Source: Octopus bimaculoides (Eukaryota). Taken from it: DNA of 61,216 bases. The notes beneath the pieces were generated by a model that worked only from the letters and a program-made list of their open reading frames with translations, made no database searches and was not told the DNA's origin. Numbering within the stretch: the first letter of the stretch is position 1; every line of letters starts with the position of its first letter. Shown here in pieces: positions 1-55,047 of the stretch. A program made the translations under genes and the position numbers. Location of the stretch: NCBI RefSeq assembly GCF_001194135.2, contig NC_069005.1, positions 35,159,944-35,221,159 on the forward strand, written 5' to 3'.

Positions 1-800
1 GGTTTCGAATCCTATTGGTGCTGGTCATCTTATTCTTTCAAATGTGCTCATTCTGATGCATTTACTATGGGACATGCATGAAGGCCACAATTCTCCCGAC
101 TCACAAATGTTTTCCCATAAAATGGAATCGCAAGATTCAAGTTTAAGTAATTGTGATTGTAACAGATACCTGTGACGTATTGGGGATTTGGCCGTACTAA
201 TAAACTTTGGTGAAAAAAACTAATCAATTAAAGAGCCTGTATGGGGGGGGGGGTCACTCGATCTGCTGGAGAAAATAACCAAATCTCCCTCAAATCACAT
301 CCTACTTTAGATTGTTGAATATTCTCTGGTGATAAAAAATATATCAGGTGGTCATGGTTGGGATCGATCATAAGTCTTGCTGAGCTTCGCTGGTTATAAG
401 CAACAACCATCTTAGCAGAGAAGCGAAAATATGGAGTAACAAGTTGAAGAAGAAATGATTAAAAGTTAGGGAGAAGAAAATAATAATCTCCCATGAAGGA
501 AAAGAATAAAAGAGGCCGAGAAGAAGAAGAATGCTTTACATGATTTATTTCCGGTCATGAAACGGTCACACCGGATGTCGTCTGATTTCACATGAGAGCT
601 TACATCCGTCCATTAACGAACAGCGAAACGGATGATGGTCAACTTAATCACGGTCAGTTATTATTATCATCATCATCATCATCATTGTCCGAAAAAGAAA
701 GAGCGCCGAGCTAAATCTCCCGATAAATTCAATTTCATAAGAAAACCATGATTAATATTAATATCGTGCCAAGTACTGTCAATTTACTTTCGAAGACTAT

Positions 801-802
<2 letters not shown>

Positions 803-849
<47 letters not shown>
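803..849. repeat. (GT)n microsatellite, representative of many (GT/CA), (TA), (CT/GA), (AAT), (GAT) and (GAG) tracts
   Basis: Read directly. Other examples: 2946-3014 (GT), 4030-4063 (GAG), 5130-5180 (CT), 27054-27130 (ATT/GTT). Confidence 0.95.
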
Positions 850-855
<6 letters not shown>

Positions 856-2117
856 GTATGTGTGTATGTATGTGTGTGTGTAATTGTAAATATGTATGTA
901 CTCTATGAGAGAGAGAGAGAGAGAGAATTGCACAATGCTGTCTTCATAAAACAAATAAAAAATGTTCTCAATGTTATGCATGTGAAGTGGTGGTTCTGGT
1001 ACGAGAGAGGCTTGGAGGGAGATTTCAGCTGGGTTGTGCTTCCAGTGACCCTCTCTTTGGTAAGGTCACATGGCTAATAATACTTTGAAGTCCCTTTCCC
1101 AGTAAACTAATCTGTGTTGGTAAGGATTATTCAGCAAATTTCGTAGTTTCGGATAAAGTCTCTTTTGCGGTGCGAAAGAGAAGAGAATCAATCAGTTTTA
1201 AGTCAATTCAATCAGTGGTAGGGTGATTGATTATTGGGGGGGGGGGGAGAAAGGTTTGTCCTTTAAGTGGTCAATTCACGTTTATTGAAACCACGTAACT
1301 AAAGAATTGAAATGGTGGACGTAAACCCTGGTCCAGTTTAACCCCAGCATCAAGTTGCTCCATAATGAGACCCACTCTGTTTTAAAGATTGGGACCAGGT
1401 TTACGGTTTGAGGACAACTTCCACCCGCCTCGAAAATCCTAATAAGGGTCAGCTGAATAAGCCGTTGGAAACAGGTAAGGGGTGGCGACAGGAAGGACAT
1501 CTGGCTGTAGAAAATTTGCCTCATCCAATTTCTACTGGTCTGTACAAGCATGGAAAAGAGTGTTGACACGACCAATGGTCCCTGTCAGGCTTTTCCTTCT
1601 TTTTCATGTGTGTGTGTGTGTGTGTGCGCGCACGCACACACACACGGACGACACTAATTAATGCTCGTGTCTAGATACGAACTTTCGACTCCCAAGGAAA
1701 TAGGTCATCATCGAGTGCTGCCGCTCCTGTGCTATTGTTTCACTAAAATAGTTGAGACCATGCTGGAGCAGTGCCATTGTCCAATCCCGCCTTATTAGAG
1801 GAGGGGGGGGGGGAGAAGAGAAATCTATGTTCGAAGCAGGAGACGTGTCGGAAGTGAGATTAGAACTGGCAAAGCTTATTTCCGTCACTTGAAGTATTTT
1901 ATCAATTTAAACTTTTCCGACAGTCATCACTGGATAAACACAATAACCACGTGGCCACAGGATCACGTGTTGTGATGTCAAGGTGAAAGTTTATTGTCGT
2001 AGCTTCATCATAAACAAGAACTGAATTTGTGATGATGATGATGATGATGATAGCGAATTTAACTGCTCACTACATTATATTCTACCACACTCTCTCTCTA
2101 CATATATATATATATGT

Positions 2118-2470
2118 GTGTGTGGTTAAGGCAGCGGACTCGCGGTCGTTGGATCGCGGTTTCGATTCCCAGATTGGGCGTCGTAAGTGTTTATGGAGCA
2201 AAAACACCTAAAAGCTCCACGAGGCTCCGGCAGGGGATGGTGGCGAACCCTGCTGTACTCTTTCACCACAACCTTCTCTCGCTCTTTCTTCCTGTTTCTG
2301 TCGCACCTGTATTTCAAAGGGGTCAGCCTTGTCACACACTGTATCACGCTGAATCTCCCTGAGAACTACATTAAGAGTACACGTGTCTGTGGAGTGCTCA
2401 GCCACTTGCACGTTAATTTCACGAGCAGGCTGTTCTGTCGATCGGATCAAATGGAACCCTCGCCGTCGTA
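2118..2470 (+). mobile_element. Full-length-looking tRNA-derived SINE
   Basis: Head GTGGTTAAGGCAGCGGACTC...GGTTTCGATTCC (A/B-box-like), a GC-richer body, and (TA)/(TG) microsatellites on both sides. Confidence 0.65.
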
Positions 2471-2942
2471 ATATATATATGTGTGTGTGTGTGTGTGTAA
2501 TACGATTTAAATTTAAATTGGACAACAAATAACCAGTACTTAAAATTCCGTGTGTGTGAGCGTGTGCGCGCGCGTGCATATATAAGCAAACATACACGAA
2601 CACGTACACATATACACACGTCTATGTCATGTCTAGCTAAAGTGAATGATGACACTTGTTGAGGTAGAAACATGTCTGCAATTGTCCTCTTGTCTGCAGT
2701 TAACAACGGGTTGTGCTTTTGTTGCTGCATGTTTATTCCGGAGAATTGTTCATTCTTTGAGATCATCTTGCCTTCTCATTGTGTTTGCTGCTTTTCTCTC
2801 GAATCGAAGAGAAATTCAAGGAATTAAGAAAACATTTGTCTTGTATGGTGTTCAATAAACATTTCTTTGTCTTTGTCATCCAGATCCATGCAACTGGCCA
2901 CTCTCCGTTATTTCTCTTTGCTGGGTTTGTGTAGATATATAC

Positions 2943-3016
<74 letters not shown>

Positions 3017-3283
3017 ATTTATTGGTTAGCATCCTTTGTTCTTGCCCACCCTCACGCTACAGGTCAGTTTGATGCAGCCTATTGTCAACTTCAACCATTA
3101 CTCCTAATGTCAACAATATGTTTCTTCCCATAACCACTCCTACCGAAATTCATATAAGATACATACCAGTAACATCTGATGTATTTTCTACAAACAAAAC
3201 CTTTCCCTACGACCATCCTGTCTTGTTATTTCTTATAAACTTCTAGTTTTTAATGTATTCTTTCTCTCTTTCCTCCGTTTCAG

Positions 3284-4374
3284 AAATATTTGATGGAGTT
3301 CGGCTACGTTAATGGCCCAAGTTTAGAGATGGAAAATTTGATGAGCGAAGAGGCTCAGGTGAAAGCAATCCGTAGATTCCAGGCTTTTGCCAATTTACCC
3401 CTCACAGGACGTCTTGACCATCGGACAATAGAATGGATGGAAAAACCTCGATGTGGAAATAAAGATACTTTACCGGAGGATACGTGGGGAAATGAGAGAA
3501 AGAAACGATACGTTATATCTGGATCCCAATGGGAGAAAACGAACCTGACGTTCAGGTGAGTAATGGCCGACGACGTCTGATGACCTCAGAGCATGTTGTC
3601 ACATAATGTCTGTAGATGTCTCATGTTTTATGTTGTCTGATGTTCTTGTTATCTAATGTTTGGTACAAACGTTCTATTTGCTACACTCACAGAGATTTAG
3701 CAAACACATTTACGCGGAACCTCGATCTCCTTGAAATAGCAACCAAATCTCACTCAAATCGCATCCTACCAATCTTGAGGGACAGGATAATGTAATTCTG
3801 GATATATTATGTCTAAATGAAAGTAAGAATGGTTACAGATACCACATCCTTGCTTGTAGGTCTGCTGGGTCAGGGCTGACCTAGGGCTCAACAACGATAT
3901 CAACCCGTTCGCTTCTGACAACAATTAAAACCGGACATTAATTAATAATTTAGAGATTCCCTCTTTATAAGTCCACCTTGGTACCGCTTTGATTCTAGTT
4001 CAAGTGTTAACAACATCAAATTCATAAGTGAGGAGGAGGAGGAGGAGGAGGAGGAGGAGGAGGGGATAATAAAGACTCAACCAGTTATATCCTGGTGTCT
4101 TGAAGTATCACTGACAGTTTGAAAAAAAGCTAACAAAAGAAACTCGGGTCTTTTGGGGCTTTTTTTTACTTTCAGAATTTTTCATTAATTTCTGAAATTT
4201 TAATCCCCCCCCCCACACACACACACTCCGTTACACTCCTCCCTCTCCTTCACATTCTCTCGTTTTTTTTTTTGTCCTCACACTCTCCCCTCCTTCTCCT
4301 CTCCTTCTCTTCCTTCTTCACCTCTTCCATTATCTTGTTGCCACACTCCTTGCCACTCACGCATCCACACATTA

Positions 4375-4416
<42 letters not shown>

Positions 4417-5127
4417 TACTTTGCATTAATTACACAGGGTAATCTCGATTACCCTACTTATATCCCCGACATTACCACTCCACCACCACCACCATCATTC
4501 AAGAGGGACACTCTGCCCTCAACCTCCAATTAGGTCCTCTCCAGTCACGTCTGTTGAAAACACTTGAAATGAACCTGTATGTGGTCGCTCAACCTGCTAG
4601 AAACAACAGCCAAATCTCCCACAAACTACACCCAGCTTCCATGAAACAGCAGATGTACCTAATAGGGTCATGTACTACTCGATACATTATAGCAGATTAA
4701 CTGAACAGGATGGTCATCACTGGAACGCCTTTGACCATAGATTTGCTCGATTAGGCCCGACTTTGGGCTAAACACTCCACTTACAACTGACCAATCAGAA
4801 TACATTTCCGGCCAACACCAATCAACATCAAACAAGGCACAATATTATAAAAGCCTCTGTGACATCGCATTTGCTGGAAAGTTTAGGCCTTGGCATTCCT
4901 GAAAATACGCAGACCCACATACACAACTACTTATCGATATCTACACCCATAAACCACAGAAGTTCTAAAACATGAAAGCATACGATGTTACAGACCATTT
5001 CACAGTGAAAGATTGTAGAAATATGTGAGTGTACTCCAGTATGGCCAGAATCGCAATCAAGTCAAGTTTTGGAAAGTCACACGATCGTGCACAGTTATGC
5101 GATGCGCTACACACGCGTATATTCAGA

Positions 5128-5184
<57 letters not shown>

Positions 5185-7280
5185 CTATCCGTCCACACAA
5201 ACAAACACACAAGAAGATTAAACGGCTGCGGTGACTATTTTTTGTGGTTCCAATTTGGCAAAGAAACTAAAGAGAAAATATTACAACGATAAACCATCAC
5301 AGATCTACAATGGAAGAAGATAAACGCTGAAGAATATAGAATGGGATTTAAGAATGCCTGGTTTTGTTGTGACGAAGTTCAGGGACAACGGCTGTAATAG
5401 CAGACACCACCACCACCACCATCATCATTGGCCCCACGGCTACAATTGTCTGAAATATGTCTATTCGCCCTTCCTTTAAGCAGAGTCGGTCCGTCTTTTT
5501 TTTTTCTGTTTCTCTTAAAAGACATGACAAAACAACTGAGAGGCCGACTGAGTTCAGTCTACACACACACACACACACACACATAGGTACGTACGTATGT
5601 ATGGATGGATGGATGGATGTGTGTATGTATGTATTTTCAGGAATGCCTATTTTGTTGCCAGTATTGTTTCCACCTCCATCCTCCTCCTATCCCTGTCTCT
5701 TGTTCAGCAGATTTTGGCAACAGAATTTAATATCACCATCACCATCACCAATTACTGCCGCAACCAAAACAATCATAACATAAGCCGCCGCCGCCACCGC
5801 CACCACCACCACTGTCTGACAGTGAAAGTAGAAAAAAATATTTGTTTTTGTTGTTGTCAGTTATAGAAAACTTGATCACCATTTATTGAACTCTATTATA
5901 TTATCGATTGATCACCGTTTATTGAATACAGTTTACCGGTGTTACATTATAATTATTATTATTTTATTATTACTATCATTATTATTATTATTAATGTTGC
6001 TGTTGTTATGATCATTATTATTATTATTATTGTTATCTGCTGCTTTCATCACATTATCATTCTTTGTCGCGCTCATAATCATTTCACACGCACACATACA
6101 TTATCTACCTACCTACCTACCTACCTACCTATCTGCCTAGTTATCTATTTGTCTGTCTGTCTGTCTACTGTATTCCTTCGGTATTGGTCTAGAGAGTGTC
6201 GGTATGACGTGACGACATTATTAACCCTGTTTTTCAGCTTAGACTCTTAATCTGTCATGAGGGAAAGTTGAGTGGGGGAATGCCGTCGTTTACTAATATC
6301 GAAGGATTGCTATGATATATATATATATGTGTGTTAGACCTACTAATTTCGCCTATCGGTTTGTTCAACTTACACACAGAGCGAGGCGCGGTTCGCCATA
6401 TAACTTGCTGAAGCTTTTTTTCTGCTCGAAAATTTCTTCAGATTTGTTTTCAGTGTTGAAAATAACGGTCTGGTAAAACTTCTCTCTCTCTCCATATATT
6501 TGTGTGTGTAGTATGTATATAGAGGTATGAATGAGTTAGCTGCTATCTTTCGAAGTTACTTCCGTTGTAAGAAATTCGCTCAAAAGTGTAGGTAGGGGCG
6601 AAGGGTAGTGATTATAAAGATGTTGTTGTGATTGTTATATTCAGGAAACATCTGCTGGATAAACGTGGAGAACTGCTCCACCGCCTCCATCACCACTACA
6701 GCAGTCATTCTTTAAACCTAAACTCTAGGCCGTTGAAGAGGTTGGCGGGGAGACGTTTGATAATACAGGGGGCGGCCCCCTCTTATATATCCGTCGACCT
6801 AAGCTATACAAAGTCACGGTTACTGTAACCTCTAGCTTCAAGACGTATTCGTATTATTGTTGTTGTTGTTACTTTACATCCGACTCCTTCTCCCCTTCTT
6901 TCACTTCAGTGTTCTCTCTCTCTCTCTCCATATTCTTTTCCATATTGATTATTACACTGTCTCCCAGAGTTTGAACAGTTTAACCGTAACATAACCTGTT
7001 ACATGTATATATTACATACATATAATATGTATATATATATATAGAGAGTTATTAATATTTCTAAGTCTCTCTAAAGGAGACTACGGCAGCGGTACTGGAA
7101 ATTAATAGTTATCGCCAAGCCAACATGGCAGTCCCAAAATTATATATATATATATATAGTGAAGTGCCAGTTTTTACATCAAATCTGGTCCTCGGAAGTA
7201 TAAATTCACGTTATCTGTAAATGTTCCGTTCTCATTCCGAAACTTTAAAATACACCCCACTTCCGGGGCCATACATACAT

Positions 7281-7330
<50 letters not shown>

Positions 7331-7348
7331 NNNNNNNNNNNNACATAC

Positions 7349-7400
<52 letters not shown>

Positions 7401-9783
7401 TCGGTAAACCTAACATAATAGAACTCAATTCATAGTGTGATGTCTGCATTTTTCTGTTCTTGTTTTTCATTGGTACAAAGTTACAGAAGTTACTCGCGAG
7501 CTAAGGTTTTGATGTTCTATCTTTGAGTTACTTTTGTAACTTTCTGCCAATTATGAATAATAATAACAATAATGTAAACACTGGTGAAATCTATTCTAGC
7601 GGTGACCATCAATCCTTTCGTTGACATTGTATATCAGCCACTACTTGGATGCCCTCTTTTTTTCATCCTGTAGTGTGTGGTTGAAGGAAGGTTGACTGTT
7701 ATTTCTAGCATGTCGAGTGACTCATAAAGGCTGCTTCCTCGTTGATTCGCGCCTAGTATGAATGTTTGAAGATGGCGCTGATGGGGATGTTGGCTTTTGA
7801 AAATTCTTCCTTCACCCCAGATTTCTATCGTCTGCAGGAATGTCAGACTTATCAAGTTACCCTCTCTTCTCATACCCGCCTTCAGTCGCGATATTTAAAA
7901 CCTTCCTACACACACACACACACACACACACACATACTGTCTTTCCCTTTCTGTCAGTCTGTTTCTCTCTCTCTCTCTCTTTCTCTCAGACACACACACA
8001 CACACACACCTATATACACATACAGTGCAAATCCCCAATTCTCACACATCGCTACAGCATATACATAAATATATAACATACACACTTCAAAATATGACAT
8101 ACAAATGCTCACATAGTGTGAGAGGCTAATTGAGTCTCACATTATACACACACAAGTACATAACACACAAATGATGGCAAAATAAGCAGTTATAAAACGG
8201 CCACAATTAAATCCTAAACGCACAGGCGTGTGTGTGTGCCTGTGTGCAATAGATGTATCGTGGCGCCAAGTGTGGCCTGGCCCTCGAAACGTACCTGGTG
8301 GCGCCTACCCACTTAATCCTACTTAAACATCTCCCAATCTTTCTTCCTCCCTCACATCACCACTTATATAACTGCTGCACTATTTCGTACTTTCTTTCAA
8401 TTTCTTTGCCGCAAGCCACCCCCGTTGGGTCTGACTCACCAGTCTGCCTCACTTCATAGCCATTCCATTTAGACAAGAGACCACAGTGAAATCCTTCACT
8501 TTCTCTTTGTGCGAAAAATTTGAAGGATGGGGGATGAGGGATGGGGTTTGCTCCTTTTGATTTCGTCGTGGCCGGCAGCGAGTTCCAGCCGAATCAGTCC
8601 ACAATATCACATCTGTTTACCCAGAAGGAATATTATTTGTGCCCATCAATTTGGGATCAAGGAAGCAGACGGGTGGAAGGGATTTCTTTCAAATATCTTC
8701 GCAACATCTCGACAACACTTCCACCATAACACTAACGGTCACTTCTACAACACCACTACAGCATTGCTATCACCACACCAACACCACCACCACCACTGCT
8801 ACAACAACTCCTACTACTACATGTAACCATTACTATCAGACCATTGACTCTATTTACTTGGCACCACCACAAGGGTACCACTACCAATACTGCTATTACA
8901 CCACTGGCGCAAATGTCGAAACACCATCCCTGTCTTATCTATTACTACTACTACTTGAAAATGTACTAAGCCAACCCTGATATTGAAACGTAAACCTACT
9001 TCCTTCACCACTGACAGCAGCTGCAGCCAGTAGTCATAGCAACCTAGAAGAAAGCAGTGACGGGACGAATGTCTTCATCCGTACCATCATTACCACCAGC
9101 AACAGCAGCAGCAGACCGTTACCATGGTGATGAAGATGGGACAAATTGTCGGGGAAACACACACACACACGCCCTGAACCTGTTGCCTTGCTTGTCCTTG
9201 TTCAGTTTGGTCGTGGTGTTCAGAGAATCATCACAACCTGCTTGAATGAGGAGAAGCGGGAAGACGTCACAGCGGAGCCGAGAAAGACAAAGGAAGAAAC
9301 GAGGGTGGGGCACGACGAATGGGAAATGCTGGGGCAAAAAAAAAAAAAAAGAGCAGGTAAAAGTTATTGGGTCATTTTTTAAACTTGATACAAAGCAAAT
9401 TTGTACTCCAGTATATAGCTGGTATCAATATGGAAACTAAGAAATGATCTCAACAGTCATTGAGTCTAAAAGTTATGTAGTCTGCTGCCCCTCATCCGCA
9501 AGTATTTTGAAGTAGATATGCTATCGTGTGATGTTCATGCCTTTCCCCTATTGGTAAGGAATAGATTTCATTTGAATCAGGATTTCTTGCCAGAAGATTC
9601 AAAACCAAGCTGTGGACAATATTTACGATGAAGTGCAACACGCACGCACACACACACACAAACACACGCAGAGGACAAATTAAAAATACAAACAGGAAAA
9701 GACAACAAAAGTCAATTAGACGTCCACAGTGAATATACAGTATATAACAGTTATATAGGAGTCTGTGTGTAAGCCTGTATGTA

Positions 9784-9850
<67 letters not shown>

Positions 9851-12800
9851 ATAGATAGATACATATGGACGGGTGACTAAAAAGTGAAAAGCAGAAGGTA
9901 ACTACGAAGTCAATTCCGGTGAATATGGTTGCTCGGGGAAACGTCTGAGTATGGAGACCGGAAGTATGGAGACAAGGTGTTGTTTGAATAGAAAGTAAGC
10001 GAAAAAGACATAAAGGATAGAAATGGGGTAGGAGAGAAAGTGAGGCGTTAAGGGTAATTGGACGAGAAGTAGGAAGGAAGAGCTCAGCTTGACAGAACCA
10101 TATAGCTAGATATGTATTTGTAAAAGAGATGGACGAAAATATGGAAGAATGACCGATCGTATTTGCTTGTGAAATAATTTAGTAGTTTTCTTGTAAAATA
10201 GTTATTAAATTCTATAGTTTTAGGTGCCTAGTCCTTGAATGTCGACCTATAAGCATCTAGTAAGGAGTTGGGAAACAACTGAAGAAGTTACCACCTTTAT
10301 TTTTAATATGTCTGTGACGTTAGAGCAACCATTCTAATTGGCCGAGATGCCATAACAGTTCACTTAAGTAGCAGACAGCGATCGAAGGTCATTGAATATA
10401 GCAGAAGCTTACTTTCTTGGCGAGAACCACGATATTTTATCTCAACATCGTTGTACATTTGTTGCTTTTGTTCCTGTGTTTAACCTTCTGGTGTTGCTTT
10501 AAAAGAAAAAAAAATGTCCTCGTTGTTGTACTTGTTGCCACGTGATATCAACCATTTTGTATGAAGGAGTCAAATTGTCCTTTCAAGCCTGCTTTGTTAT
10601 TTGATAAAGTGCTTTACATAAAAAAAATTGCTGCTTTTTTTTTTTAAAACCAAGTAAACAGGGGAAATAATTCCCATGGGCTAAAACTCTTCCCAGTTAA
10701 TATCACGTGATATATTCAAATATTATATCATGTGAAATCTACCCCTTTACTTTGACAGTCAAACACGACATCACACCTCTGCTTGTTAGAATTTTGAACC
10801 GTAAGTCTATTCTGACTCCACCTCCAACTACACACATTGCTGTCTTGTTAATTGACGGGCCAACACACGAGCATTTTTTAGGGTTTCGGAGATTCTTGAG
10901 GTGGAGTTCTTAGTCTGGAAACCAAATGCTTGCAACAGAATGGACTCTGCTTAAGACGGCCCAACGGCCTAGTGGAGGGCATCGAACCAGAGACAGATCG
11001 TGTTTGCCTCCAATCCTTTCCCTGAGTGGACTCTACGGAGGACACACAGTGACCAGGACTGACTGTGCCCACCATTGAAATATGTCTGTTGTATTAAGGT
11101 TCTAGTAACCAGGTCTCGGCCGACCTCGCTTGGCTTTCAACACTTCTAACACGTATGAAGATACACATATATACACACTCACGTAAACACACACACACAG
11201 AGGTAGTGACACAGCTATATTTAAGGAAATGCACATAGACAAACACACACACACACATATGTATATATACACACACACGATAAAGTGGGGGAGGAGCGAG
11301 CAAAGAAGGAAGAAGCTGACATTGGTGGTGTTTGATTGGTGTAATTAACGTTCGTGCGGTGGTTTATATGTGTGAGTGTATATATACTTTTATTTATATA
11401 TATATATATTTGTCCGTGTATATCTGCTTGTGTGTATAATATTGCCTGAGGATCTCGAGTACGAAAAACAGTCCAAACTTTGAATAAATCGTTTCCCTTT
11501 TTTCTCTCAAAGCATTGAAGACATTTTCTCGCTTGATTGTATTCTACACCAGTGTAATACTACCAGCCAATGTGTATATGTATATACATGTGTGTATGCA
11601 TGGGTATGTAATGGGTGGGAGTGAGGGCTGAAAGTTTGTTTTTCTCGTGAGATACTAAAACGTTAAGTTTCATACAAGAACTGTTAAAAATGCAAGATTG
11701 GTTGTGGGGTAAGATAGGGCGTGGTTCTCTTTGGAGAATTATTTCGGTGGGTAGGAACTTATTATGTCAAGGAAGAAAAATGTCCATTTGTGTGTCGTTT
11801 CTCTCTTTAAATGTTTCCAGTTTTTAAGGACCATTTCAAAGGAGTAATGCATCTATTAGTATTGTTCTTATTATTTACCGTTTCCCAACTCGTCTCGGGT
11901 TATTAAAACTACGAAGATGCTGTAGCAATGATTTCATCCTAAGATTATTGAAATAATAAATCATTTTCTGGTTTCTCAAATCCCAGTTGTTTTATGAATC
12001 CCTATCATCTTACTCGCCACATCAAACAGATTTATGAAATATGTATTCCAGTAACTTCATCTTCTAAAATAGGTTTTCTCTGAAAACGTTTACAAACGAA
12101 GTATCAAGACAGGAGGAAGAAATGGAGGAAAGAAACAAAGTTATTAAAATGTATTCATTTCCAAGAGAGTCATTTTATGTTGTTTAGGCCGGCAAGTGGG
12201 TTACTGTGCCACTTTGATGTGTCGTAGTTTGTTTCTGACATGGTTAACCCAAAATACATTTGCAAAACTAAATAAACGTTACAGGAATAAACTTCCAGCA
12301 ATTCTTTAAAATGTTGAATTCACTAAAAGTGATTGACATCATGTGACTTTGCCGGGTCAGAGATCACAATGTCGGACTTGGGGAGAGTCATAGGTTACAA
12401 TTTATGGTTTATTAATGTCACAAGTTAAGACTTATCGCTAATAAGAGAGGGAGAGAGAGAAAGGGTGAAGGAAGCGAGAGATTCTAGCTATACTTTGCTG
12501 ACGAGGCCTAATAACGTTCAAACACGTCCAGAGTTGTGGCTCTTGTTACCAAAGTCTCCTCTACTACATTCCTTAAGCTCTATTTCCAAATGAGTTGCCG
12601 TCCTTGTTTCACTAGAATTTTTCATTAACTTCTAATTGTGTACTTTTAGTTAATTAGAAGAACTGGAGCCCTTACATTAATTAATAAGGGTCGACCTTGA
12701 AATGTGAAGGTTGCTTGAAAGGGTGGAAGGAGGAGGAGTGGCGGTGACGGGGCAGGGGAGAAATTAAGTCTGTGACAGAGTCGCCACAAGTTTTGGAAAC

Positions 12801-15800
12801 GCTGCAGCAACAGCAGACTTTAGGTTGTTGGTGTCACACAGTAGGGGGGGGGTGACTTAAGTTTTGCACGAAAGCCGGGAGCCTGGCATGAAACGGATTT
12901 ATATACACACCCACACACAACCGTGTGTGTGGGTGTCCTGTTTAAATCCTGCAGAACACAAGAGCTATTGAATATATTATATATATATATATATATATAC
13001 TTATGATGATATATTTGCGACGTGTGTGTGTGTCCAGACACTATATATACACACACAGACTGTGTTTACATCTGCAGTTGTGATCCATGGGCTCTAACGG
13101 ATACATCACATCCANNNNNNNNNNNNNNNNNNNNNNNNNNNNNNNNNNNNNNNNNNNNNNNNNNNNNNNNNNNNNNNNNNNNNNNNNNNNNNNNNNNNNN
13201 NNNNNNNNNNNNNNNNNNNNNNNNNNNNNNNNNNNNNNNNNNNNNNNNNNNNNNNNNNNNNNNNNNNNNNNNNNNNNNNNNNNNNNNNNNNNNNNNNNNN
13301 NNNNNNNNNNNNNNNNNNNNNNNNNNNNNNNNNNNNNNNNNNNNNNNNNNNNNNNNNNNNNNNNNNNNNNNNNNNNNNNNNNNNNNNNNNNNNNNNNNNN
13401 NNNNNNNNNNNNNNNNNNNNNNNNNNNNNNNNNNNNNNNNNNNNNNNNNNNNNNNNNNNNNNNNNNNNNNNNNNNNNNNNNNNNNNNNNNNNNNNNNNNN
13501 NNNNNNNNNNNNNNNNNNNNNNNNNNNNNNTTTTTTTTTTTTTTTTTTGTAGAGATATATTTCAGACCACATTATCTTACGAGTCTTTTTGGATGTAATA
13601 TAAGGTAATATAAGGTGGTTTGGCTGTTATTTCTAGTGTTTTGAGTGTCCACATAGAGACTCCCTCTTTAGTTCGACCCTGCGTTTAGTTGTTAGTGTAT
13701 ATGTGTATGCGTTAGTGAATGCATACTTCTTAGTGTATATGCATGTGTATATTTCTGTGTGTTTCATTGACCGCGAAAGAGAAAAAAACAAATGTGACCT
13801 TGTTCGGATCTGAACTCAGAACGTCAATGTCTGGAACTAAACCTTGCAGCCGTAGCGGTTTGTCAATCCTGTGCTTATGCTATGTAAAGAAGCTATGTTT
13901 ACTTTTGAAGATCTTGTAAATGAAAAAGTCCTCCTTCCCTCCGGGGGTTTTGGTATTCTTTGCAGAAAATATTTCGGAAGTAAAAGATCTATTAAACCAG
14001 AACCCATCCAAGGTCCGCCAGTGTTAGAGTGTTCTTTAAACCTTTAAATCAGTAGTTCTCAACCGTCGCTCCTAGGACCGCATTCAGCCCTCATGCATCC
14101 TTGCATCCTCCCGGTGGCCCTCAACGGTTTTCCCTCTATAAATATAATAAACTTTTCTTTAATTAATTTGTATTTTATCTTTCTTTTTTTATTTTATTTT
14201 GTGCGGCCCCCTAAAACATCCAGGTTTTGGATCTGGGCTTGGATACTAAAAACGGTTGGGAATCGCTGCTCTAAATAATGAAAATTTAATGCACTAGTGA
14301 CATCTTTAGTACAGCAAGGGCTAAACAATGTCGAGACAAACCGCAGTGACATAAGTCCGAGAGAAAGCAGCATTTTTCGAGTGAGAGTAACTATAACAAG
14401 CTGTAATAGTGTAGAATATTTTGAGGGAGCAATTATCGTCCAGGGAGCAGAAGGAAGGGAGCGGTATTTTGGAAAGGTTGTAGCAGATGATTTATTATTA
14501 TTATTGGAGATAATTATTTTTATAACTACTAAGGAAAAACAACACACCTGACCTTCTTTAGAATCAGACATTGGCGGAAGAAAGGAAAGATGTTAACCCC
14601 AAACCGGAGGCACGGTTCAGCTAATGGCTGAGTGTCTTTAGCAGAGTCTGCCCCTACTAAAAACACGTAGCATTTAGCTGATGATACTAAACCGAGTGGA
14701 GAAGAAATAAGTCTGCTAAGTGGAATCCATCAAAAATACGTTAGGGATTAGCTGTCCCTTGTGAAGAGTTCTCGCAGTCAACATCGGTGACCAGATGAAG
14801 TATTAAGGACGCCAGTAATAGAGAAAGGTTGACATTTCTGAGGAGCATTGTACAGTTGTGTGCCCCCCACCGCCGTCGCCACATCACCTTCACTACTGCT
14901 ACCATCACCACCACCGTTATTACTACTTTTACGACTAATCAACAGTGCGTGTGTGTTGGTCATGTGACCGTGTGAATAATTTATTGGTGTACGAACTCAA
15001 AGGAAACGAGTTCAAATCTATGAGTGCCATTTCGCTTTGTTTCTAGGTAGACCACGTCATTCTTTAATGGGAATATTGCACGAGATAGACCGGCGTTCTC
15101 TCCAGGTACAGATGTGTCTCTCTCATAGCACTACGACGCTTGCAAACACAAACTAGCGCCGGTCTCTTTCCGTTTTCCACTTTCATCGCCATCATCACCG
15201 TCATCATCATTTATCGGCTATAACTTGTGAATGATATAAAACAACATGACAGACTCGCCTCATCATCATCATCATCAGCAGCAATCATGGTACCAATTTC
15301 TATCAAGCTATTGGCAATGAATTTAGAAGCACAGCCACTGTTTCATCTTCTCGTGGTCGGTTTTACGGCAGCGTATTTTCTATGACCTTAAAAACTCTCT
15401 TATAGAATTCCATTATAGAATCTTAATTGGTGCCTGGCTGAGCTTCCTGTTATATTAAGAACGGCACACTTACGTAAGTGTGACGACAAGAGTCGGGGCC
15501 TATACATGGCCCGATCTGAGAACAACAGAGAACCTCCTCAACAGATGGCGTTTACCGAACGACCACCCTAGCAACGATAGGGAGTTGGCAGCAGCACAGA
15601 TGGGGAATAGTTGTGAACACCGCCTGTATGCTCCCATCTAAGGCTTATCTGTGTGTGTGAGAGAAGGAGAGAGAGAGAGCAGGATGGATGTATCTGTCTA
15701 TTTTCAATCGCTTGGTACTCTCTCGAAATTTTCAACTTAGCGCCACCTATCGATGCTGATTATAACGACGTCTGCGCGCGCACTACAAAAGAGCAGCAAG

Positions 15801-18800
15801 GTGAGAAGCATGCAACAAGACAGCAACATGTACAACTACAAGATAAGACTAAATATTGATCAGACGTTAATTAGAATGAGATATTATATAGTTAGTGGCA
15901 GCGGCGGTGGTGGGGATGGTGGTGTCGGTTGTGTGGTGTATGTACTGTGGTTTATGATGTTGTGCAAGTGGTGTATGCACTGGTGTGGTTAATGCTATAG
16001 TACCAATATTTCCATACCTCATTGCAGCGTTATTCTTCATCCAAACCTAAAGCACAATTCTTTGAACTTTTGAGACTCTTCAAAAATCGATTTTCATTCA
16101 ATATTTCTCAAAGATATTTGTATCGATCTGTGAGCAATGATAGATATTTGTATTGATCTGTAAATTCGGAGTCTAAAGAGAAAGATCGAACTATTTCTAA
16201 CATAGGAGTGAGCGGGATGTGGAGCGGAGGTTGAGTTTGCCGCAATACTTGGTTACTGTTTAATCTCTCCACCCTGAAAGGTTAAAAAGTGTATTTGACT
16301 CCAACGGAATTCGAACTCTGAATGCAATTAGACACCCTCAGAAACCACCGATTCCACCAGACACCCTTCTTCCCAAATCTATGCTCTCGTTCATTGTTTA
16401 TTTTTATCTTTTATATATTATCTTCATCCAGTTTTTTCTCTTTAATTTTCCATTTAACAGTCTTCTATCAATCTGTCTGTCTGTCTGTCTAAAATATTAA
16501 TGGTATGGCTACGGCTGGACCGTCTTTGATTCTTTCTACAATATAACAACATGAGTTAACTATGTACTAACCAGTGGCGTGCGGTGACTGCTGGGGTCGG
16601 GCATGCAATGAATTTCCCCCCACCCACCCCGCACTGGCAATTTTTCAGTAAAAGAATTTTCGTATTCCTACGATTTACATATGGTAGATTCTGAATATGC
16701 AACCACCCTCGTATGACCTAGAATAAGCAGAGAATAAAAAATGGCTCTGTAGAGATGAGCCTGAAATAAGTGTATTGTTTGTATCTTTCTCTCTCTTCGA
16801 AACGTCAGTACTTTCCCATCCTCGATCTCCCTTAAAAATGTCTAAAAATCATAAGTGTAATGGAATAAAGATGAAATTAGATTCTGTTAATATTTTTGCA
16901 TATTCGGAATCTCTGTTAAAGGTAGGAATCCGAAAAAATTTTTTCACAAAATTTCGTTTTTCAAAGGGGTGCGATTCTGCATTAGCCCCTATACCTATTG
17001 GTTCAGCTGAATCAATTCGAAATGATTTAATAAAGAGAACATATTTAGTTACATTATATGGCCATGGTTTTAGATAGTTACCCTCTCGAAGACAAGTCAG
17101 GTGCTTTATCATGCTCCTTGTCAATTCCTGGAAAATTATTGATACTCAAGCAGACTGTTCTGAGACTTACTGAACTCCGTATATTAAAAGACTACGTCTA
17201 ACGCACACACATTGAAAATACACGCATATACATGAATACACACACAATGAAAGACAGCGAAAATTCAACATTGTAAAAAGCCATCCAAACTGAAACTTTA
17301 AACACATAAACACACTATNNNNNNNNNNAAAAAAAAAAACTGCTGTGGCAGAAGTCAGCATCTCTGAGATTGAAACAAGACATTTACGGCCGTAAATACA
17401 CTACAACCGGCAGCACAGAAAGGAAAACCTATGTAGGTTAGGTGTGACGAAGAAGTCGANNNNNNNNNNTCCGATTCCTGCATCGACTCCATATTTTTCC
17501 CCTAATATATCATAAAAGACTGAAAAATTATCAAGTTTTGAAAATGGCTACTTTTAGATAAGAACACACGTAAATTGTCTGAGTAAATTTTAAGTCAATT
17601 TCAACAAAACGGAAAAAATAACGTTAGTCAAATTAATTTAAGATTAATTAGTTACTTCTGAAATTCAGAACACTCCAAAAATATAATAATGCAAACATGC
17701 TTTGGATAAAAACAAAATTCAAACTTACCGCCAAGTTGTTCCAACATGTCGTCTGGCTAACTCAGGAATTCTGGGATTGTTCAGGTCAGAAAGTGGAACG
17801 GGGCTGGTAACAATTGTACACAAACAAAGAGGCGGAGGTGAGGGGTGTCACGTGCGTCTTCTCAAAGCAGACGACCGAATCTCTGAGAGAGGGGGAAGGG
17901 GAGGCAGAATATATTAGAAAACACCTGGACGCAGTTTCTTTGGAAAAAAAAAGTAACTATTTTATCGAATTTTCCGATGATATCGATAAGAAATCACATC
18001 GCATGCAACGCTTAGCTTGTATGCCTGAGAGTGCATACCCCTGGTACTAACTATTTAGAAAATTTGTTCTCCATCCTTTAGAACCATTAGGTCGAAGTTT
18101 GAGTCAATGAGATGTTTAGATGGCTCAGAGTACAAAACCAATTCTTGAACAAAGACCCCAGTGTATTACAGGGTCGACCGCTGATCTTCATTGAAATTGG
18201 GTAAAATTAACAGAAGTATTTTGCTCAAAGACTCAGTCCAAGAATCGAACTGCCAAACTAACAATCGCATGCCCAATGGCTTAATTACTCGGCCACTGAC
18301 CTTCACAAAATTGTCGAAAAGGTTTTGCTATTTACACTGTTCCAGATTGAATTTAGAGAATGGCGATTCCGACGACCATCTGTGCCATAATGTTAAAGAA
18401 CCCTCGGAACTCTTTCAGTGTCTGAAAAGACTGATAGGTGGGAAGGGACGCAGCAGTTACCCTTAAATCGGTGACTTAAGCTAGGATACTTTCAACAGAG
18501 TGGACCCCGCTAAGGGGTCCACTCTGATGATGTTCCACTGGGTAACAACAGTGTGGGCCTTACTAAAGATAGCAAAGGACCAGTTGGTGGGGTTCGAGGG
18601 ACGGCTTCACTCTGTCAACCAACACAAACAGTCTCTCCCCCCCTCTCTCTCTGACCACAAAATGTTCTCTTTTGCATCAACTGACCTCCACAACAGTAAA
18701 AATTCTTAATTACTGGACAACTGGCCACTGCAACAGTTCCATGGTTATTTTATTTTTATNNNNNNNNNNNNNNNNNNNNNNNNNNNNNNNNNNNNNNNNN

Positions 18801-19540: not shown

Positions 19541-19586
<46 letters not shown>

Positions 19587-21448: not shown

Positions 21449-21509
<61 letters not shown>

Positions 21510-21728
21510 TACACACACACATATACACACATATTTTCATTCTATACATTAATATTACACCCTGTACTTCTCCCCACCCCAACACTAACTCCACCATCCC
21601 CATTGCTCTACAATTAGGTCAACTGATCACATGACACGCACAATCTCTCTATTTCAAACTGATTATCCAGCTTCTACCTCCTCTTCCTCCCACCTCTACT
21701 TCACTATATCTTAACTCTCTCTCTCTCA

Positions 21729-21770
<42 letters not shown>

Positions 21771-24700
21771 GTCCCATGTTTCTCTAAATCAATTCTGATC
21801 AAAGAGAAACCAAGACATTCCAGCCGTGATTATCCAAACTTTCTCCTAATCACTGTTGTATTCACGAGTACTTTATTCAATGTCGCTTCTTTTTAACAAT
21901 GATAGGATGTGATTTGGATGAGATTTTGCTGCTATGTCTAGCAAACCGTGTCAGCACAAATGAGATGAACCTCAATAGATTACAGCCGTTTACCTATTAA
22001 CCCTGCTTGGGTTACAGATTGCACTCTGACTTGTGTCGCCCTCTACCGTCTGAACTTGATCTCCGTACATTACTGGTACTTAAATACTGACCCCGGTGAA
22101 GTAAAAAGTTATGTTGGCTCTGGCATCATTTGATCTCAGAATGTCGAAATAACGAAATACTGCCACAACTCCCCTCTTTCTTTCTTTCTTAATCGTAATA
22201 AATACTGACAAAATTAATCGAACTCATCATTAAACCAATTCATGTGTGTCTATTGTCTTTTGTAGGTTCCTAAACTACAGTCCCGATGTGAAGTTTACCA
22301 AAATCCGGACAGTGATATACGAAGCTTTCCGCGTCTGGAGTCAGGTGACTCACCTCACTTTTACCGAGATTATGTTTGGATCAGCCAAGAAGGACGCCGA
22401 CATCCGGATTATGTTTGCGCAAAAATTCCATCACGATGGATATCCATTCGATGGACCAGGTTAGTTTCTCTCACCATAGTGGCCCGATAGCCGCACCGGC
22501 TAGCAATAACAGTCAAACTACCATCACAATTTGGAAGGAGACACGAGGTAATAATGTAGGTCTAGAAATACTGAATAAAAGATAAGGTGGTTACGGTTGG
22601 AATGACGCCAGGTGGATCAATCTGACCTAGGGTTAAGCAACAACAACAATAACCATTACACCAACATCCTTTTGTAATCGCTACACCACCATCACTCCAT
22701 CATCCCTCTTACCATGACCACCACTACAACAACGATCCGATAAGGGAGCCTGTATGTGGCAGCTCAACTTGCTAGAAATAAGTATCAAATCTCTTCCAAA
22801 TTACATTTTACAGTCTTTTAAAAAAATATTAGTGAGGGTCATATTGGACAATGTAGTCCTATATGTACTACATCTGAAATTAGACGTGTTTGTCACGGTT
22901 GGAACGGGTGTCTATAAGTCTGTTAGATCAAAACTAATCTGTGGCTAAACAACATCGTCACTTTTATGTAGAAAATTGAGGGTGAGCTGCGAGTATAATT
23001 GACTTCAGTATATAACTGGTACTGGACCCAAGAAGGATAAAAGGAAGGCGTCTAGAATTGAACTTTAAATTTACAACATAAAATAGTGTGTGTGTGTGTG
23101 TGTATACGTGTGTGTAGCTGTGTGTGAATGTATGTTTGAGCGTATGAGAGTGTATGTATGCATAAATGGAATGTTTGTGTTTGCATGTATCTATACGAAT
23201 GCGTATGTATGCGTGTTTGTGTCTATTCGTGCATCTATGCATGTGTTTGTGTGTGATGTTGCCATCCCCGATTGACCTCTGACTCTCTCTTTTGTCCAGG
23301 CAATATTCTGGCTCACGCATTCTTCCCGGGTGAAAACAAAGGAGGAGACGCACATTTTGATGATGACGAGAATTGGACAGTCGATTCTGATGAAGGTAAG
23401 TGCCACTATCCGGCTGTACCTCTGCCGGGTACATCTCTACCTGGGTACATGTCACCCATTAGCAGTAATAGATAATGAGTTCTTGAATTAACATGAGACC
23501 ACAAGCCTAAAAGAAATGCAATCAATACTCTCCACCCGAGAACACGACTGGTACAACGACAACAATCAGATACGCAAGCATTTACTGCCCACCTCCACCC
23601 TTACGCGGCGATTAATTTTTTATGGGTAGCGATACTGTTCACTACGGACAGAGAGCAGACGGGTATCACTCACCGCCGCTACCTACTACTACTACTACTA
23701 CATAACTGCATTGAGTCCGTCCGTCCGACAGTGTAGCAACAGATGACTATGATTTAGACTGATGAGTGAGGTTAATGTTTAACTACGAGTGTTCGGTTTA
23801 AAGATTAAAGTAGGCTGATAGGAGGGGAGAAGTACGAGGTGGAGGGAAGTGAGACAGAGTAGGTCGAGAGATGAAAAAGGATCAGACACTGGCGTAGGGA
23901 CGTAAAAAGTTGGAGAGGCTACAGCGTGACACTGATCACGTGACTGGAGTAGGGGACATATCTAGAGTGACCTCCCTTGTTTTTATTTCCCCACAAAAAT
24001 TTTAATTCAAATAAAGATGAATATATTTTGCTCAGGAGAATAGGATCCCCCCTCCCCACCATAGTATGAGTGTTAGGTACACGACGTAGTTACAAACATA
24101 TGAACGGATAAATATGTCAATGGACTTACACAGACATCTTCATATTCACAAGCAGAGAAAATTGACGTCCAATGTGTACTTTATCTGTGTACTCGATCGG
24201 TAAACACGAGTTCTTTTTTAGTTTATTGTTCCGTCGTTTGATTTCAAATATTTTAACGAACTCTTCTCCATTCTGTTGACAAAATGTTAACTTTTAAACC
24301 GCAGGATTCGTTATATCTTCTTCTCCCTCTTTCTCCCTCTCCCTTCTTTCAAGTTCTTGTTTCTTGTTGTGTATAGAAGGGATGAGATACCCCCCCCCCA
24401 GTCCGTCATGCTTGATCGCCTTTGGAACGGATGGTCAAGCGCGTCCAATGAATAAAGATTTTGGACTGAAATTCCTTTGAATTAATTCAAGGAAATGTTC
24501 GAATGGCTTACAACTATTAATCTGATATTTCTCACCTTTTGGAAAAACTTATTTTCATGTCTTGCTTTCAAAACACGAATCAGGTTTTTTGCTTTAATTT
24601 TGCATAATTGATTAGTTTCTAAATTTTGAATAATTTTGAATAATTTTGAATCGAGATGACACAAGGGAGATAACTTGTCCTACTCTTATTTCTACGCAAG

Positions 24701-27629
24701 CACACGCACACAGCGCTTCTGTTGGATTCTAACCTGTTATGTCCTTCCTTTATTTGCAGGAGTCAACCTGTTTATGGTAGCAGCTCATGAGTTTGGTCAT
24801 GCTTTGGGTTTGTCCCACAGCAAGACCCCAGGATCACTGATGTATCCATGGTATGCCGGAAAACAGTCAAAATATTACACCCTCCCAAAAGATGATGTTG
24901 AGGGCATCCAGAAACTTTATGGTGAGACAGTTTCTTTCTTTCTTCCTTTTTATACGTAATCACACACACACACACACACACATAATGGCAGTAACTATAG
25001 CCATGTAGTTAAGCAGTTTGTTTCCTATCAATGTGGTCCCATGTTCACTCCCCTTATCTTCTGCATGATGGTAGATGGAATTCCTCATAGCTGCAGGTTG
25101 ACCAATACCTTTAAAAGAAGAATTTGGTACAAAGTTTGATTGCAACCCAAGTTAAAGACTGGTCCTCCCTGGAATTCTGTAAAAGACATTTAACTGAGCT
25201 GAATGTCAAACAGCTTAAACACACACGTTGTCACATACGTATGCACACGCTTACACTTTCATGTCTTGTTAATTACATGTCAATTATTAATTGCAGGTGT
25301 TAAAAACAGTAATAACACACCTGTGATAGTTTTAGTCCCTAACCATGAAGGATCTAAAGAAGATAAAGATGAGAAAAAGGAGGAAGAGGAAGATGAAAAT
25401 AAAGATGAAGGCTTCGTTGATAATTGCACCCACAAATTCGACGCTATTACCAGAATTAGAGGTGATGTTTACATCTTCAAAGGAAAGGTGAGTCTGAAAC
25501 ACCAGCTGGTACCTCTGCTGTTGGGAAATTTTTACAGGTTTTTAATAAAATTCTCTAAAAAGTAAATAAGTGCAATGATGAGAATTGAACCAATGATCTC
25601 TCTGTTTAGATGAATACAGTACAACTCCATAACATAATGTTTAAAATAAAATAAAAAGAATTATCTAAACACCTCTGTTAGATTTAGTGCCAGCATTTGA
25701 TGGGGGTGGGGGGTGCAGCTAGCAATGTCATTGTGACACCAACAACCACTACCCTCCTCCCTCTACTACAGCTATCATCCATCACCACCACCACCACTAC
25801 CATTTCCCTCTAAGCTACCACCTCCAACACCTCCCCCCGAATCTACCGACCATTTTCCACCAGAAATATTCTTAAAATCGGTTTTGTTTTTGTTTTTGAC
25901 CAGTATTTCTGGCGTTGGGAGTCTGGAGGCATGAAAGACAGTTCTCCGATACTAATAACACAGTTTTGGTACAACTACCCAGAAGATAGTGTTGATGCTG
26001 TCTTTGAACGGAAGAAAGGTTCCAAAATTATGTTCTTCAAAGGTAAGGCAAATTAACCATTTTTTCAAATTCACAATGGAATGTATTTTTCTGCTTCTTT
26101 TTCTTTAGAATTGAGTAAATTCCTTCTCAATTTCCTGAAAATTTTTCTTATCACTGATTGTGTTTTTATTACAGGTAACAAGTACTGGTTGTATGATGCC
26201 AATCATATGGAGAAAGCTTGGCCCATTGAAGGCCGACCCTTAACAGAGCTTGGTCTGCCAGCAGACCTGAAGAAAATCGATGCAGCTTTCACCTGGAGCT
26301 ACAACAAACGTACTTACCTGGTCAGTGACGATATGTACTGGAAGTTTGACGAGAACGAAAATTATGTTGTCTATGACTACCCACGAGATATGAAAATTTG
26401 GCAAGGAGTCCCAACACCACTTGATGCAGCTTTCCAGTTTAATGATGGTAAGTGAAGAACTCTTTTATGACTTCTTTACAAGAAGTGCTTCTAGAAGGCT
26501 AAGTGGCTCCTCTACTTTAGCTGCATAGCTTTGCTAGAGCAAGTGTCACAAAAAAAGGAGGCCCCCCCCCTCCCCGCAGATCAGTTTGTGGAAAGGCATC
26601 CAGCCATAGAAACTGTGCCAAAGCAGACATTTGGAGCACAAAGCAGTCTTTGGACCTAAGACTCCTTCCAGGCTTCCAAAAACTCTTGGGAGAGAAATGG
26701 CTGACATTTTCCTCAGATATAACATCTGGCTTAACTGACTGCAAAAGAGTGGATTCTGTTAAAGATAATCAAGGACCCCAGGTGGTTGCGTTAGAAAGAG
26801 TGACACCTTAAGTCTATCTCCCAACACTAGTTTCAGGAGCATGAAGTGGAAATGAATCTGCACCGGGATTGAACAGTAGTCTGTTATATGCAACTTCCTC
26901 TTCAAACTGGTGAAATCTACTCCACACAGCTGTGAATACAGACTGGACTGTATGATTAACAAATTTAATTAAATTTATTACCTCCTACACTGGTGTGAGT
27001 GGGTGAGTAAGTGGGTTTGTTGAAGATAGAATCCATTGTTAATAACGAGAATATTATTATTGTTATTATTATTATTATTATTATTATTGTTATTATTGTT
27101 ATTATTATTATTATTGTTATTATTATCATTATAGGTGGTGAGCTGGAAGAATCATTAGCATGCCAGACAAAACGCTACTAAGTATTTTGTCTGTTTTTAT
27201 GTTCTGAGGAGTCAACACTATCATCATCATCCTTATTATTATGATGATGATGATGATGATGATGTTGATAATAATAATGATAATAATAATAATAATGTGG
27301 ATGACAAATTTTAGATAATGTCGATGATGTTGATGATACTTTTCATGATGATGATGATGATGATGATGATGTTTTCTGTTGCAGGAAAGACATATTTCAT
27401 AAAAGGCAAACATTATTGGGAATTCTTAGACAGTCAGATGCGTGTGAAGACAAAACTACCAACTGGCAATATTTCCGAACGTTGGATGCAATGCAAGACA
27501 CCACCAAAGAACATAGGACTTCCAAAATCCAGCCACGGAGTCCCCACTCCTTCAAAGGGTTTCTCTGCCCTCTCTCTAATGGCACTACCAAACCTAGTGC
27601 TCCTTTCTCTCCTCACCTCATACTTATAG
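3284..27629 (+). CDS. Matrix metalloproteinase (M10A), furin-activatable, probable GPI anchor (MMP17/MMP25/Drosophila Mmp2-like); 5'-partial
   Basis: Exons rebuilt with GT-AG and consistent phases: 3284-3555, 22266-22459, 23300-23395, 24760-24921, 25297-25487, 25904-26042, 26175-26447, 27385-27629 (stop). Motifs: cysteine switch PRCGNKD, furin site [34 protein letters not shown], zinc motif [11 protein letters not shown], Met-turn LMYP, acidic hinge, hemopexin repeats (FDAI, IDAAF, LDAAF) and a hydrophobic C-terminus. The signal-peptide exon was not identified. Confidence 0.95.
4574..4772 (+). repeat. Interspersed repeat family CTGCTAGAAAxAGCAGCCAAATCTCC...GGATGGTCAT...GGGCTAAAC
   Basis: At least seven degenerate copies in the window: about 255-385, 3715-3905, 4574-4772, 22750-22955, 41365-41565, 43060-43240 and 46565-46720. 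Confidence 0.6.
4791..5030 (+). promoter_or_regulatory. Candidate internal Pol II promoter and alternative first exon in the MMP intron
   Basis: CCAAT at 4791 and 4818, TATAAAAG at 4846-4853, first downstream ATG at 4972 in AAAAC-ATG context, 17 codons plus 2 nt, then donor GTGAGT at 5025-5030 (phase 2, matching the acceptor at 22266). Confidence 0.45.
14050..14268. mobile_element. hAT (Charlie-like) MITE
   Basis: TIRs CAGTAGTTCTCAACC (14050-14064) and GGTTGGGAATCGCTG (14254-14268); 8-bp target duplication CTTTAAAT/CTCTAAAT (one mismatch); no coding capacity. Confidence 0.75.
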
Positions 27630-34440: not shown

Positions 34441-34608
34441 AAACACAAACACATATATATGTTGGTATTAGCAAGAGCATCTAACCATAGAAAGTATACC
34501 AAATCAGACTGGAGTCTGGTGCAGCTCCCCAGTGTGGGAGAGATGATTCTCCCCTTTACAGTTCTCTCTCTCTATTCCCTCACCACTCTCACAGTTCAGT
34601 GTGATCCT

Positions 34609-35221: not shown

Positions 35222-35268
<47 letters not shown>

Positions 35269-36166: not shown

Positions 36167-36208
<42 letters not shown>

Positions 36209-38356: not shown

Positions 38357-38396
38357 AATTGGTGGTGAGGCTTGCAGGGTCTTCAGGAGACAGGGA

Positions 38397-54279: not shown

Positions 54280-54312
<33 letters not shown>

Positions 54313-55003: not shown

Positions 55004-55047
<44 letters not shown>

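Follow-up and report, generated by a model that had tools for sequence, protein, structure and literature searches.

We propose that a short segment of the Octopus bimaculoides genome, positions 4789 to 5030 of a 61,216-nucleotide stretch of contig NC_069005.1 (hereafter the window), may comprise a TATA/NF-Y core promoter and an alternative first exon, spliced to the exon at 22266, of a matrix metalloproteinase (MMP) gene of the glycosylphosphatidylinositol (GPI) type. We regard this reading as plausible, with a probability of roughly 0.35, for a transcript that is itself a prediction. The segment lies 1.4 kb into the 18.7-kb intron between exon 3284-3555 and exon 22266-22459, and 17.2 kb separate the candidate exon from the acceptor at 22266. 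The proposal builds on the presence and spacing of the motifs, on reading frame and splice phase, on the content of the conceptual product and on the rarity of the composite; transcription, splicing, folding, activity and localization of the isoform are predicted from these.

Motif order and mutual spacing fit a TATA/NF-Y core promoter for RNA polymerase II, with CCAAT at 4791 and 4818, a TATA box at 4846 and a predicted start site beyond it. In the layout expected of such promoters, the TATA box lies some 25 to 35 nucleotides and the CCAAT box some 60 to 100 nucleotides upstream of the start site. Relative to the predicted start, the first CCAAT box is at about -85 and the second at about -58, distances from transcription start at which NF-Y sites are normally found. 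An initiator-like cgcATT, with its A at 4869, lies only 23 nucleotides from the TATA box. The local CpG observed/expected ratio is 0.8 to 0.93 (80th to 90th percentile of the window), a value that would fit a TATA-type, non-housekeeping promoter and is not evidence for one.

The start codon at 4972 stands in the context aaaacATGa, where the A at -3 suits the invertebrate start-codon consensus. The frame that it opens reads ATG AAA GCA TAC GAT GTT ACA GAC CAT TTC ACA GTG AAA GAT TGT AGA AAT AT and ends at a phase-2 donor at 5024/5025. Joined to the phase-2 acceptor of the MMP gene (tttgtag/G at 22265/22266), AT plus G completes a methionine codon followed by FLNYSPDV, and the result is an open frame of 450 residues. 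The predicted alternative junction between 5024 and 22266 reads AAGATTGTAGAAATAT followed by GTTCCTAAACTACAGT; the canonical junction between 3555 and 22266 reads CGAACCTGACGTTCAG followed by GTTCCTAAACTACAGT. An in-frame TAA at 4966-4968, two codons 5' of the ATG, closes the frame upstream. The candidate can therefore only be a first exon, never an internal one, and an internal cassette exon was rejected on this ground. Without splicing, the frame would run straight into a stop (ATG TGA, overlapping the donor) and count 18 codons, and the unit therefore makes sense only if spliced. The sequence-only reading of this DNA had reported both CCAAT boxes, the TATA box, the first ATG, the frame of 17 codons plus AT and the phase-2 fit to exon 22266, and had called the whole intronic. 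All of these are borne out by the letters themselves, the intron being bounded by the phase-2 donor of exon 3284-3555 and by exon 22266. The donor that it called consensus, GTGAGT, is consensus in this intronic part.

The host gene was rebuilt on the forward strand as eight exons encoding 523 residues without the signal-peptide exon. No convincing phase-0 candidate for that exon was found in window positions 1-3283, and it probably lies upstream of the window. In Pfam, Peptidase_M10 (PF00413) matched the canonical protein over profile positions 1-159 (E = 3.7e-62), hemopexin (PF00045) matched in four stretches (E = 2e-33), and PG_binding_1 matched weakly in the prodomain (25.6 bits). The cysteine switch PRCGNKD, of the PRCGxPD type, is encoded at 3446-3466 within exon 3284-3555. 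This exon ends with 16 mature N-terminal residues, including most of β-strand I, and with a phase-2 donor (..ACG TTC AG/GTGAGT, that is, cag/GTGAGT). At the C terminus (27490-27629), a Ser/Gly/Pro stalk is followed by small residues and then by 22 hydrophobic residues, resembling a GPI signal; similar tails are present in Lingula, Owenia and Logan (P0122) homologues. Like MMP17 and MMP25, the host protein combines a PRCG prodomain, a furin site (RKKR/Y), a catalytic domain, a linker, four hemopexin blades, a stalk and a hydrophobic tail. We infer that it is a furin-activated MMP of the GPI-anchored membrane-type MMP (MMP17/25) build, the anchor being suggested by the tail. Its nearest relatives (a Logan transcript, Owenia, Plakobranchus, Lingula and a Panulirus "MMP-25-like" protein) are nevertheless only 44 to 52% identical. 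In O. sinensis, an MMP gene is called beside TUBD1 with a product of 520 residues, exactly the length of the O. bimaculoides model begun at the methionine of MEFGYV in exon 2. This suggests that the O. sinensis gene model follows the canonical exon 2-to-3 path without the signal-peptide exon, so that the annotation of that assembly, too, may lack the true first exon.

Splicing from 5024 to 22266 gives a conceptual product of 450 residues, the first 18 of them new. Its N-terminal 25 residues show no hydrophobic core, as expected of a protein without a signal peptide, and the prodomain is absent with the skipping of the whole of exon 3284-3555, including PRCGNKD. The zinc site and the Met-turn are retained. 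In AlphaFold2 models, the alternative residues 14-19 (DCRNMF) are modelled as β-strand I and the catalytic fold is kept. Over residues 11-20, the mean predicted local distance difference test score is 90 (93 for the canonical control); averaged over the whole model, it is 84.7 (control, 85.4). These models show only that the fold is not obviously excluded.

The mechanism that we envisage begins with NF-Y-type factors on both CCAAT boxes and TBP on TATAAAAG, from which transcription would start at about 4869-4885. An exon of about 150 nucleotides (an ATG-free leader of about 95 nucleotides plus 53 coding nucleotides) would then be spliced from 5024 to 22266, skipping both the signal-peptide exon outside the window and exon 3284-3555. 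Translation from the ATG at 4972 would yield 18 new residues, the catalytic domain from the middle of β-strand I, the linker, the hemopexin domain and the hydrophobic C terminus, 450 residues in all. Such a protein would be cytosolic because it lacks a signal peptide and never latent because it lacks the cysteine switch. As it would not enter the endoplasmic reticulum, its GPI signal could not be processed, and we speculate that the unprocessed hydrophobic C terminus might serve as a tail anchor. The intracellular, non-latent isoform named in the sequence-only reading would follow in the same way from a hypothetical transcript.

Of the two halves of this observation, the exon is ordinary and the promoter unusual. 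TATAAA with at least two CCAAT boxes 20 to 110 nucleotides upstream occurs once in the window, at the candidate site, against 0.55 expected over both strands (probability of at least one, 0.40). RRCCAATCAG has a single occurrence in the 61 kb, at 4789-4798, against 0.54 expected. The pattern CCAATCA..CCAATCA..TATAAA, picked after the data had been seen, was present in 1 of 100 shuffles. For the composite as a whole, 8000 first-order Markov introns with the length and composition of this intron were searched for TATAAA, a first ATG 60 to 250 nucleotides downstream and an open reading frame (ORF) reaching GTRAGT in phase 2. The composite had P = 0.026 with the TATA box alone, 0.0029 with at least one CCAAT box and 0.000125 (1 of 8000) with at least two, values that are post hoc, on a pattern selected after reading, and that have to be discounted 10 to 30 fold. 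After this discount, about 0.1 to 10% remains, and chance is a minority explanation for the promoter module, while for the proposal in its entirety it still has to be reckoned with.

That discount is one of several points that weigh against the proposal. Others concern the exon. A phase match alone is a 1-in-3 event, as the sequence-only reading had itself allowed, and by our own estimate from base composition a right-phase stretch from ATG to GTRAGT is expected about 1.5 times per phase, with one seen. Among the seven GTRAGT sites on the forward strand of the intron, an ATG-initiated frame reaches one in phase 2, one in phase 1 (a trivial case) and none in phase 0. The donor tat/GTGAGT scores about 2.6 by our own calculation with a generic donor matrix, low because T, the rarest base at that position, stands at -1. 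It is not among the 25 best of 1045 GT sites in the intron, and all seven scored donors of the MMP gene exceed it (3.99 to 9.19). The candidate region is also no CpG peak, unlike the promoter region of the neighboring TUBD1 gene, where the observed/expected ratio reaches 1.5 to 1.9.

A further set of objections concerns the protein. The Peptidase_M10 match of the conceptual product begins at profile position 10 of 159, with positions 1-9 lost. Canonical strand I, NLTFRF (residues 12-17 of the control model), is an interior strand for which the skipped exon supplies five of the six residues; L, T, F and R are replaced by C, R, N and M. The catalytic domain of the conceptual product is consequently not intact. 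The sequence-only reading had described a product without signal peptide, cysteine switch and first catalytic strand; for the conceptual product this stands, with the loss of strand I amounting to five of six residues. The AlphaFold2 result is biased in favor of the new strand, as homologues in the alignment were matched to the alternative residues.

Database searches speak only weakly against the proposal and carry no weight as negatives, since the same searches missed the O. sinensis MMP of 520 residues beside TUBD1. Within this limit, the 450-residue sequence had no exact match in a collection of 15 billion proteins, a chimeric query returned nothing above 58% identity and no protein covering the new N terminus, and a search with the exon 2 peptide returned no candidate. 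Five Met-start variants of the canonical protein likewise had no exact match in the protein collection, a lookup of one window ORF returned no record, a metagenome scan with the start of exon 3, meant to read the preceding sequence, gave 0 matches, and peptide strings gave no match in a full-text literature search. The O. sinensis locus that was compared ends at the equivalent of window position 26035 and misses the candidate by about 21 kb. Intergenic and intronic sequence is already 80 to 92% identical between O. bimaculoides and O. sinensis, and a two-species comparison therefore has low power, save for the presence or disruption of key motifs.

An alternative hypothesis is that the constellation arose by chance: an AT-rich intron of 18.7 kb would happen to bring together two CCAAT words, a word resembling a TATA box and a short ORF that runs into GTGAGT, with nothing transcribed. 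Each part taken singly agrees with this, from the expected counts of the motifs and of the right-phase ORF to the mediocre donor and the truncated fold of the product. Moreover, the pattern was picked after 61 kb had been read, making nominal P values optimistic, and an automated gene model from Plakobranchus (P0127) illustrates how easily spurious upstream "exons" are found before this very exon. What the hypothesis explains poorly is how all elements come to stand together on the correct strand, correctly ordered and spaced, as they did in 1 of 8000 simulated introns and in 0.3% when one CCAAT box suffices, and we consider it somewhat unlikely. A different possibility, which we consider unlikely, is that the promoter is real or a relic but unrelated to any MMP isoform, belonging instead to a non-coding or nested transcript or to the remnant of a low-copy mobile element or of the 5' end of a transposed gene, with the ORF and donor incidental. 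The statistically unusual part is indeed the promoter module and not the ORF or its phase, the phase match contributes a likelihood ratio of only 3:1, and positions 4775-5128 form a short unique island between a short interspersed nuclear element (SINE)-like repeat and a (CT)n microsatellite. A low-copy mobile element is a possible source of this island. On the other hand, a search of the window and of 33 kb from O. sinensis for further copies of 4775-5128 came up empty, and neither termini resembling long terminal repeats nor a poly(A) signal was seen on reading the candidate segment. A nested protein-coding gene gained no support, none of the ten tested intron ORFs (70 to 132 residues, both strands) having a Pfam match, nor did a structured RNA or small nuclear RNA-type gene, with 0 Rfam matches at gathering score and 0 tRNAs; there is hence no positive sign of a nested gene or element.

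Within the proposal of an MMP first exon lies a stronger version, in which the isoform would be made and would act as a functional, constitutively active intracellular MMP comparable to N-terminally truncated MMP-2 (NTT-MMP-2). The evidence for the promoter and exon bears on this version too, together with the intact zinc site and Met-turn and the AlphaFold2 fold with its new strand I. However, NTT-MMP-2 keeps the whole catalytic domain, whereas here most of strand I is replaced, and the support from AlphaFold2 is biased by the alignment. We judge this version, which is a subset of the proposal, to be improbable, a long shot on the present predictions.

Table 1. Coordinates in the window of the candidate promoter and first exon, the adjacent repeat and the exons of the host MMP gene
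Feature	Position	Strand	Remarks
Dispersed SINE-like repeat copy	4565..4774	+	Ends at GGGCTAAAC; 5' limit of the unique candidate segment
CCAAT box 1, GACCAATCAG	4789..4798 (CCAAT 4791-4795)	+	Perfect extended NF-Y consensus RRCCAATCAG
CCAAT box 2, CCAATCA	4818..4824 (CCAAT 4818-4822)	+	27 nucleotides after box 1
TATA box, TATAAAAG	4846..4853	+	
ATG-free leader	4854..4971	+	First ATG at 4972
Predicted transcription start zone	4869..4885	+	23-39 nucleotides past the first T of the TATA box; prediction only
Candidate coding part of first exon	4972..5024	+	17 codons plus AT, phase 2
Candidate splice donor, tat/GTGAGT	5025..5030	+	Intronic part consensus; exonic -1 is T, weak
MMP prodomain exon (exon 2)	3284..3555	+	PG-binding-like prodomain, cysteine switch PRCGNKD, furin site RKKR, first 16 mature residues
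MMP exon 3, phase-2 acceptor	22266..22459	+	FLNYSPDV...FDGPG
MMP catalytic exon	23300..23395	+	GDAHFD
MMP catalytic exon	24760..24921	+	Zinc site of HExxHxxGxxH type (11 residues), Met-turn SLMYP
Acidic linker and beginning of hemopexin blade 1	25297..25487	+	
Hemopexin exon	25904..26042	+	
Hemopexin exon	26175..26447	+	
Last MMP exon	27385..27629	+	Hemopexin blade 4, Ser/Gly/Pro stalk, 22-residue hydrophobic C-terminal tail, TAG stop

Two further origins of the candidate segment were considered and rejected. That the promoter and exon form part of the adjacent SINE-like repeat is contradicted by independent copies of that repeat, which align only as far as GGGCTAAAC (4774). That the exon arose by duplication and later decay of the 3' portion of exon 2, with which it shares the GTGAGT donor and a similar start (KRY versus KAY), is not supported by local nucleotide and protein alignments, which were no better than those of shuffles (P = 0.79, 0.44 and 0.55). 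The SINE-like family itself is about 200 bp long with a conserved core, ..CTGCTAGAAATAGCAGCCAAATCTCC..GGATGGTCATGGCTGGAA..GATCAGGGCTGACCTAGGGCTAAAC, and at least 15 copies or fragments occur in the 61 kb on both strands, mostly in introns. They include 4565-4774, 3706-3893, 43055-43260, 46564-46714, 46085-46235 (reverse strand), 41348-41574, 22745-22959, 21782-21948 (reverse), 60517-60654 (reverse), 252-381 and 7582-7738 (reverse). A separate, tRNA-related SINE-like element is present at 2125-2470 and at 1-30. It contains a sequence similar to a B box, GGTTTCGATTCC, and its long tail, ..GTATTTCAAAGGGGTCAGCCTTGTCACAC.., is conserved; it resembles the abundant octopus SINE, and ARAGORN and Rfam reported nothing at these positions. 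Assembly gaps amount to 4204 N in total, of which 1103 N fall inside the intron of the candidate (7331-7342, 13115-13530, 17319-17328, 17460-17469 and 18760-19414) and may hide exons or repeat copies; the others are at 28021-29019, 29470-29697, 31774-32218, 35325-36166, 53703-54279 and 55048-55057.

Downstream of the MMP gene, the window contains TUBD1 (34530-38467, reverse strand) and then a HEAT-repeat gene (about 45500-59000, forward strand) with DUF4042 and HEAT domains, which is HEATR6-like. The same three genes occur in the same order on O. sinensis CM016883.1, over positions 1-23072 of the locus compared. We take TUBD1 and HEATR6 to be neighbors on human chromosome 17q23 as well, and the order of MMP, TUBD1 and the HEATR6-like gene may represent ancient microsynteny. 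Two TUBD1 exons (37206-38467, reverse strand) match UniProt A0A0L8HXZ7_OCTBM at 100% identity across 261 residues; their identity to O. sinensis is 96%. The strongest peak of CpG observed/expected in the window, at 38550-39300 (1.5 to 1.9 compared to a median of 0.49), is found immediately 5' of the first exon of TUBD1 and looks like a CpG-island-type TUBD1 promoter, an internal example of a housekeeping promoter in this genome.

If the transcript is real, MMP isoforms that lack a signal peptide and a prodomain and arise from an intronic promoter would not be confined to vertebrates; to our knowledge, such isoforms have so far been known from MMP-2 and MMP-11. The locus would also provide a cephalopod example of a GPI-type membrane protease redirected to the cytosol, a modest extension of a known theme that would introduce no new principle. 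If the transcript is absent, the locus would serve as a case for caution, in which a short in-phase ORF in a long intron is roughly what chance would give and the promoter module alone stands out.

Computational annotations of related genes offer two comparisons. The Lingula anatina "matrix metalloproteinase-2 isoform X3" (XP_013397466.1, P0278) has the same build, with a furin site, hemopexin domain and hydrophobic tail, and is likewise a predicted signal-less isoform; the longer Lingula isoform X2 (P0125) is 44% identical to the octopus protein. Unlike the octopus candidate, X3 begins at a methionine within the prodomain exon (MESGRAELRT...), with the cysteine switch retained and the catalytic domain complete. 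In the MMP gene model GFO32799.1 of the gastropod Plakobranchus ocellatus, true homology begins exactly at the boundary equivalent to 22266 (FQTY..) and is preceded by a junk N terminus encoded by a microsatellite. Evidently, gene prediction across this long intron is prone to spurious upstream exons.

The analogy with human NTT-MMP-2, drawn in the sequence-only reading, holds for the theme of an alternative promoter in an MMP intron, with the signal-peptide exon skipped and a product neither secreted nor latent, and is loose in its details. Transcription of NTT-MMP-2 starts in the 3'-terminal part of intron 1, immediately 5' of exon 2, adding no new coding exon, and translation from the conserved Met77 in exon 2 keeps the whole catalytic domain; mapped start sites, cDNAs and Western blots back this isoform (Lovett et al. 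2012, PMC3317925). In contrast, the octopus candidate lies one intron further on, 17.2 kb upstream of its acceptor, would add 18 new codons while removing the entire prodomain and 16 mature residues, and is a prediction from sequence. Closer to it is the intracellular β isoform of stromelysin-3 (MMP-11; Luo, Mari, Stoll, and Anglard 2002, J Biol Chem 277:25527). According to the title of that paper and to PMC4573893, which cites it among isoforms without a signal peptide, promoter usage together with alternative splicing generates this isoform, and the enzyme is active as translated. By analogy, and on the strength of that citation, this isoform is the nearest precedent for the octopus proposal. 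It is a vertebrate, secreted-type and furin-activated MMP shown experimentally, whereas the octopus case is of the GPI type and purely predicted. A cytosolic, never-latent octopus form, in which an 18-residue leader replaces strand I and the GPI signal acts as a tail anchor, would be an independently evolved invertebrate counterpart of NTT-MMP-2 and β-stromelysin-3, an outcome that we rate as quite improbable.

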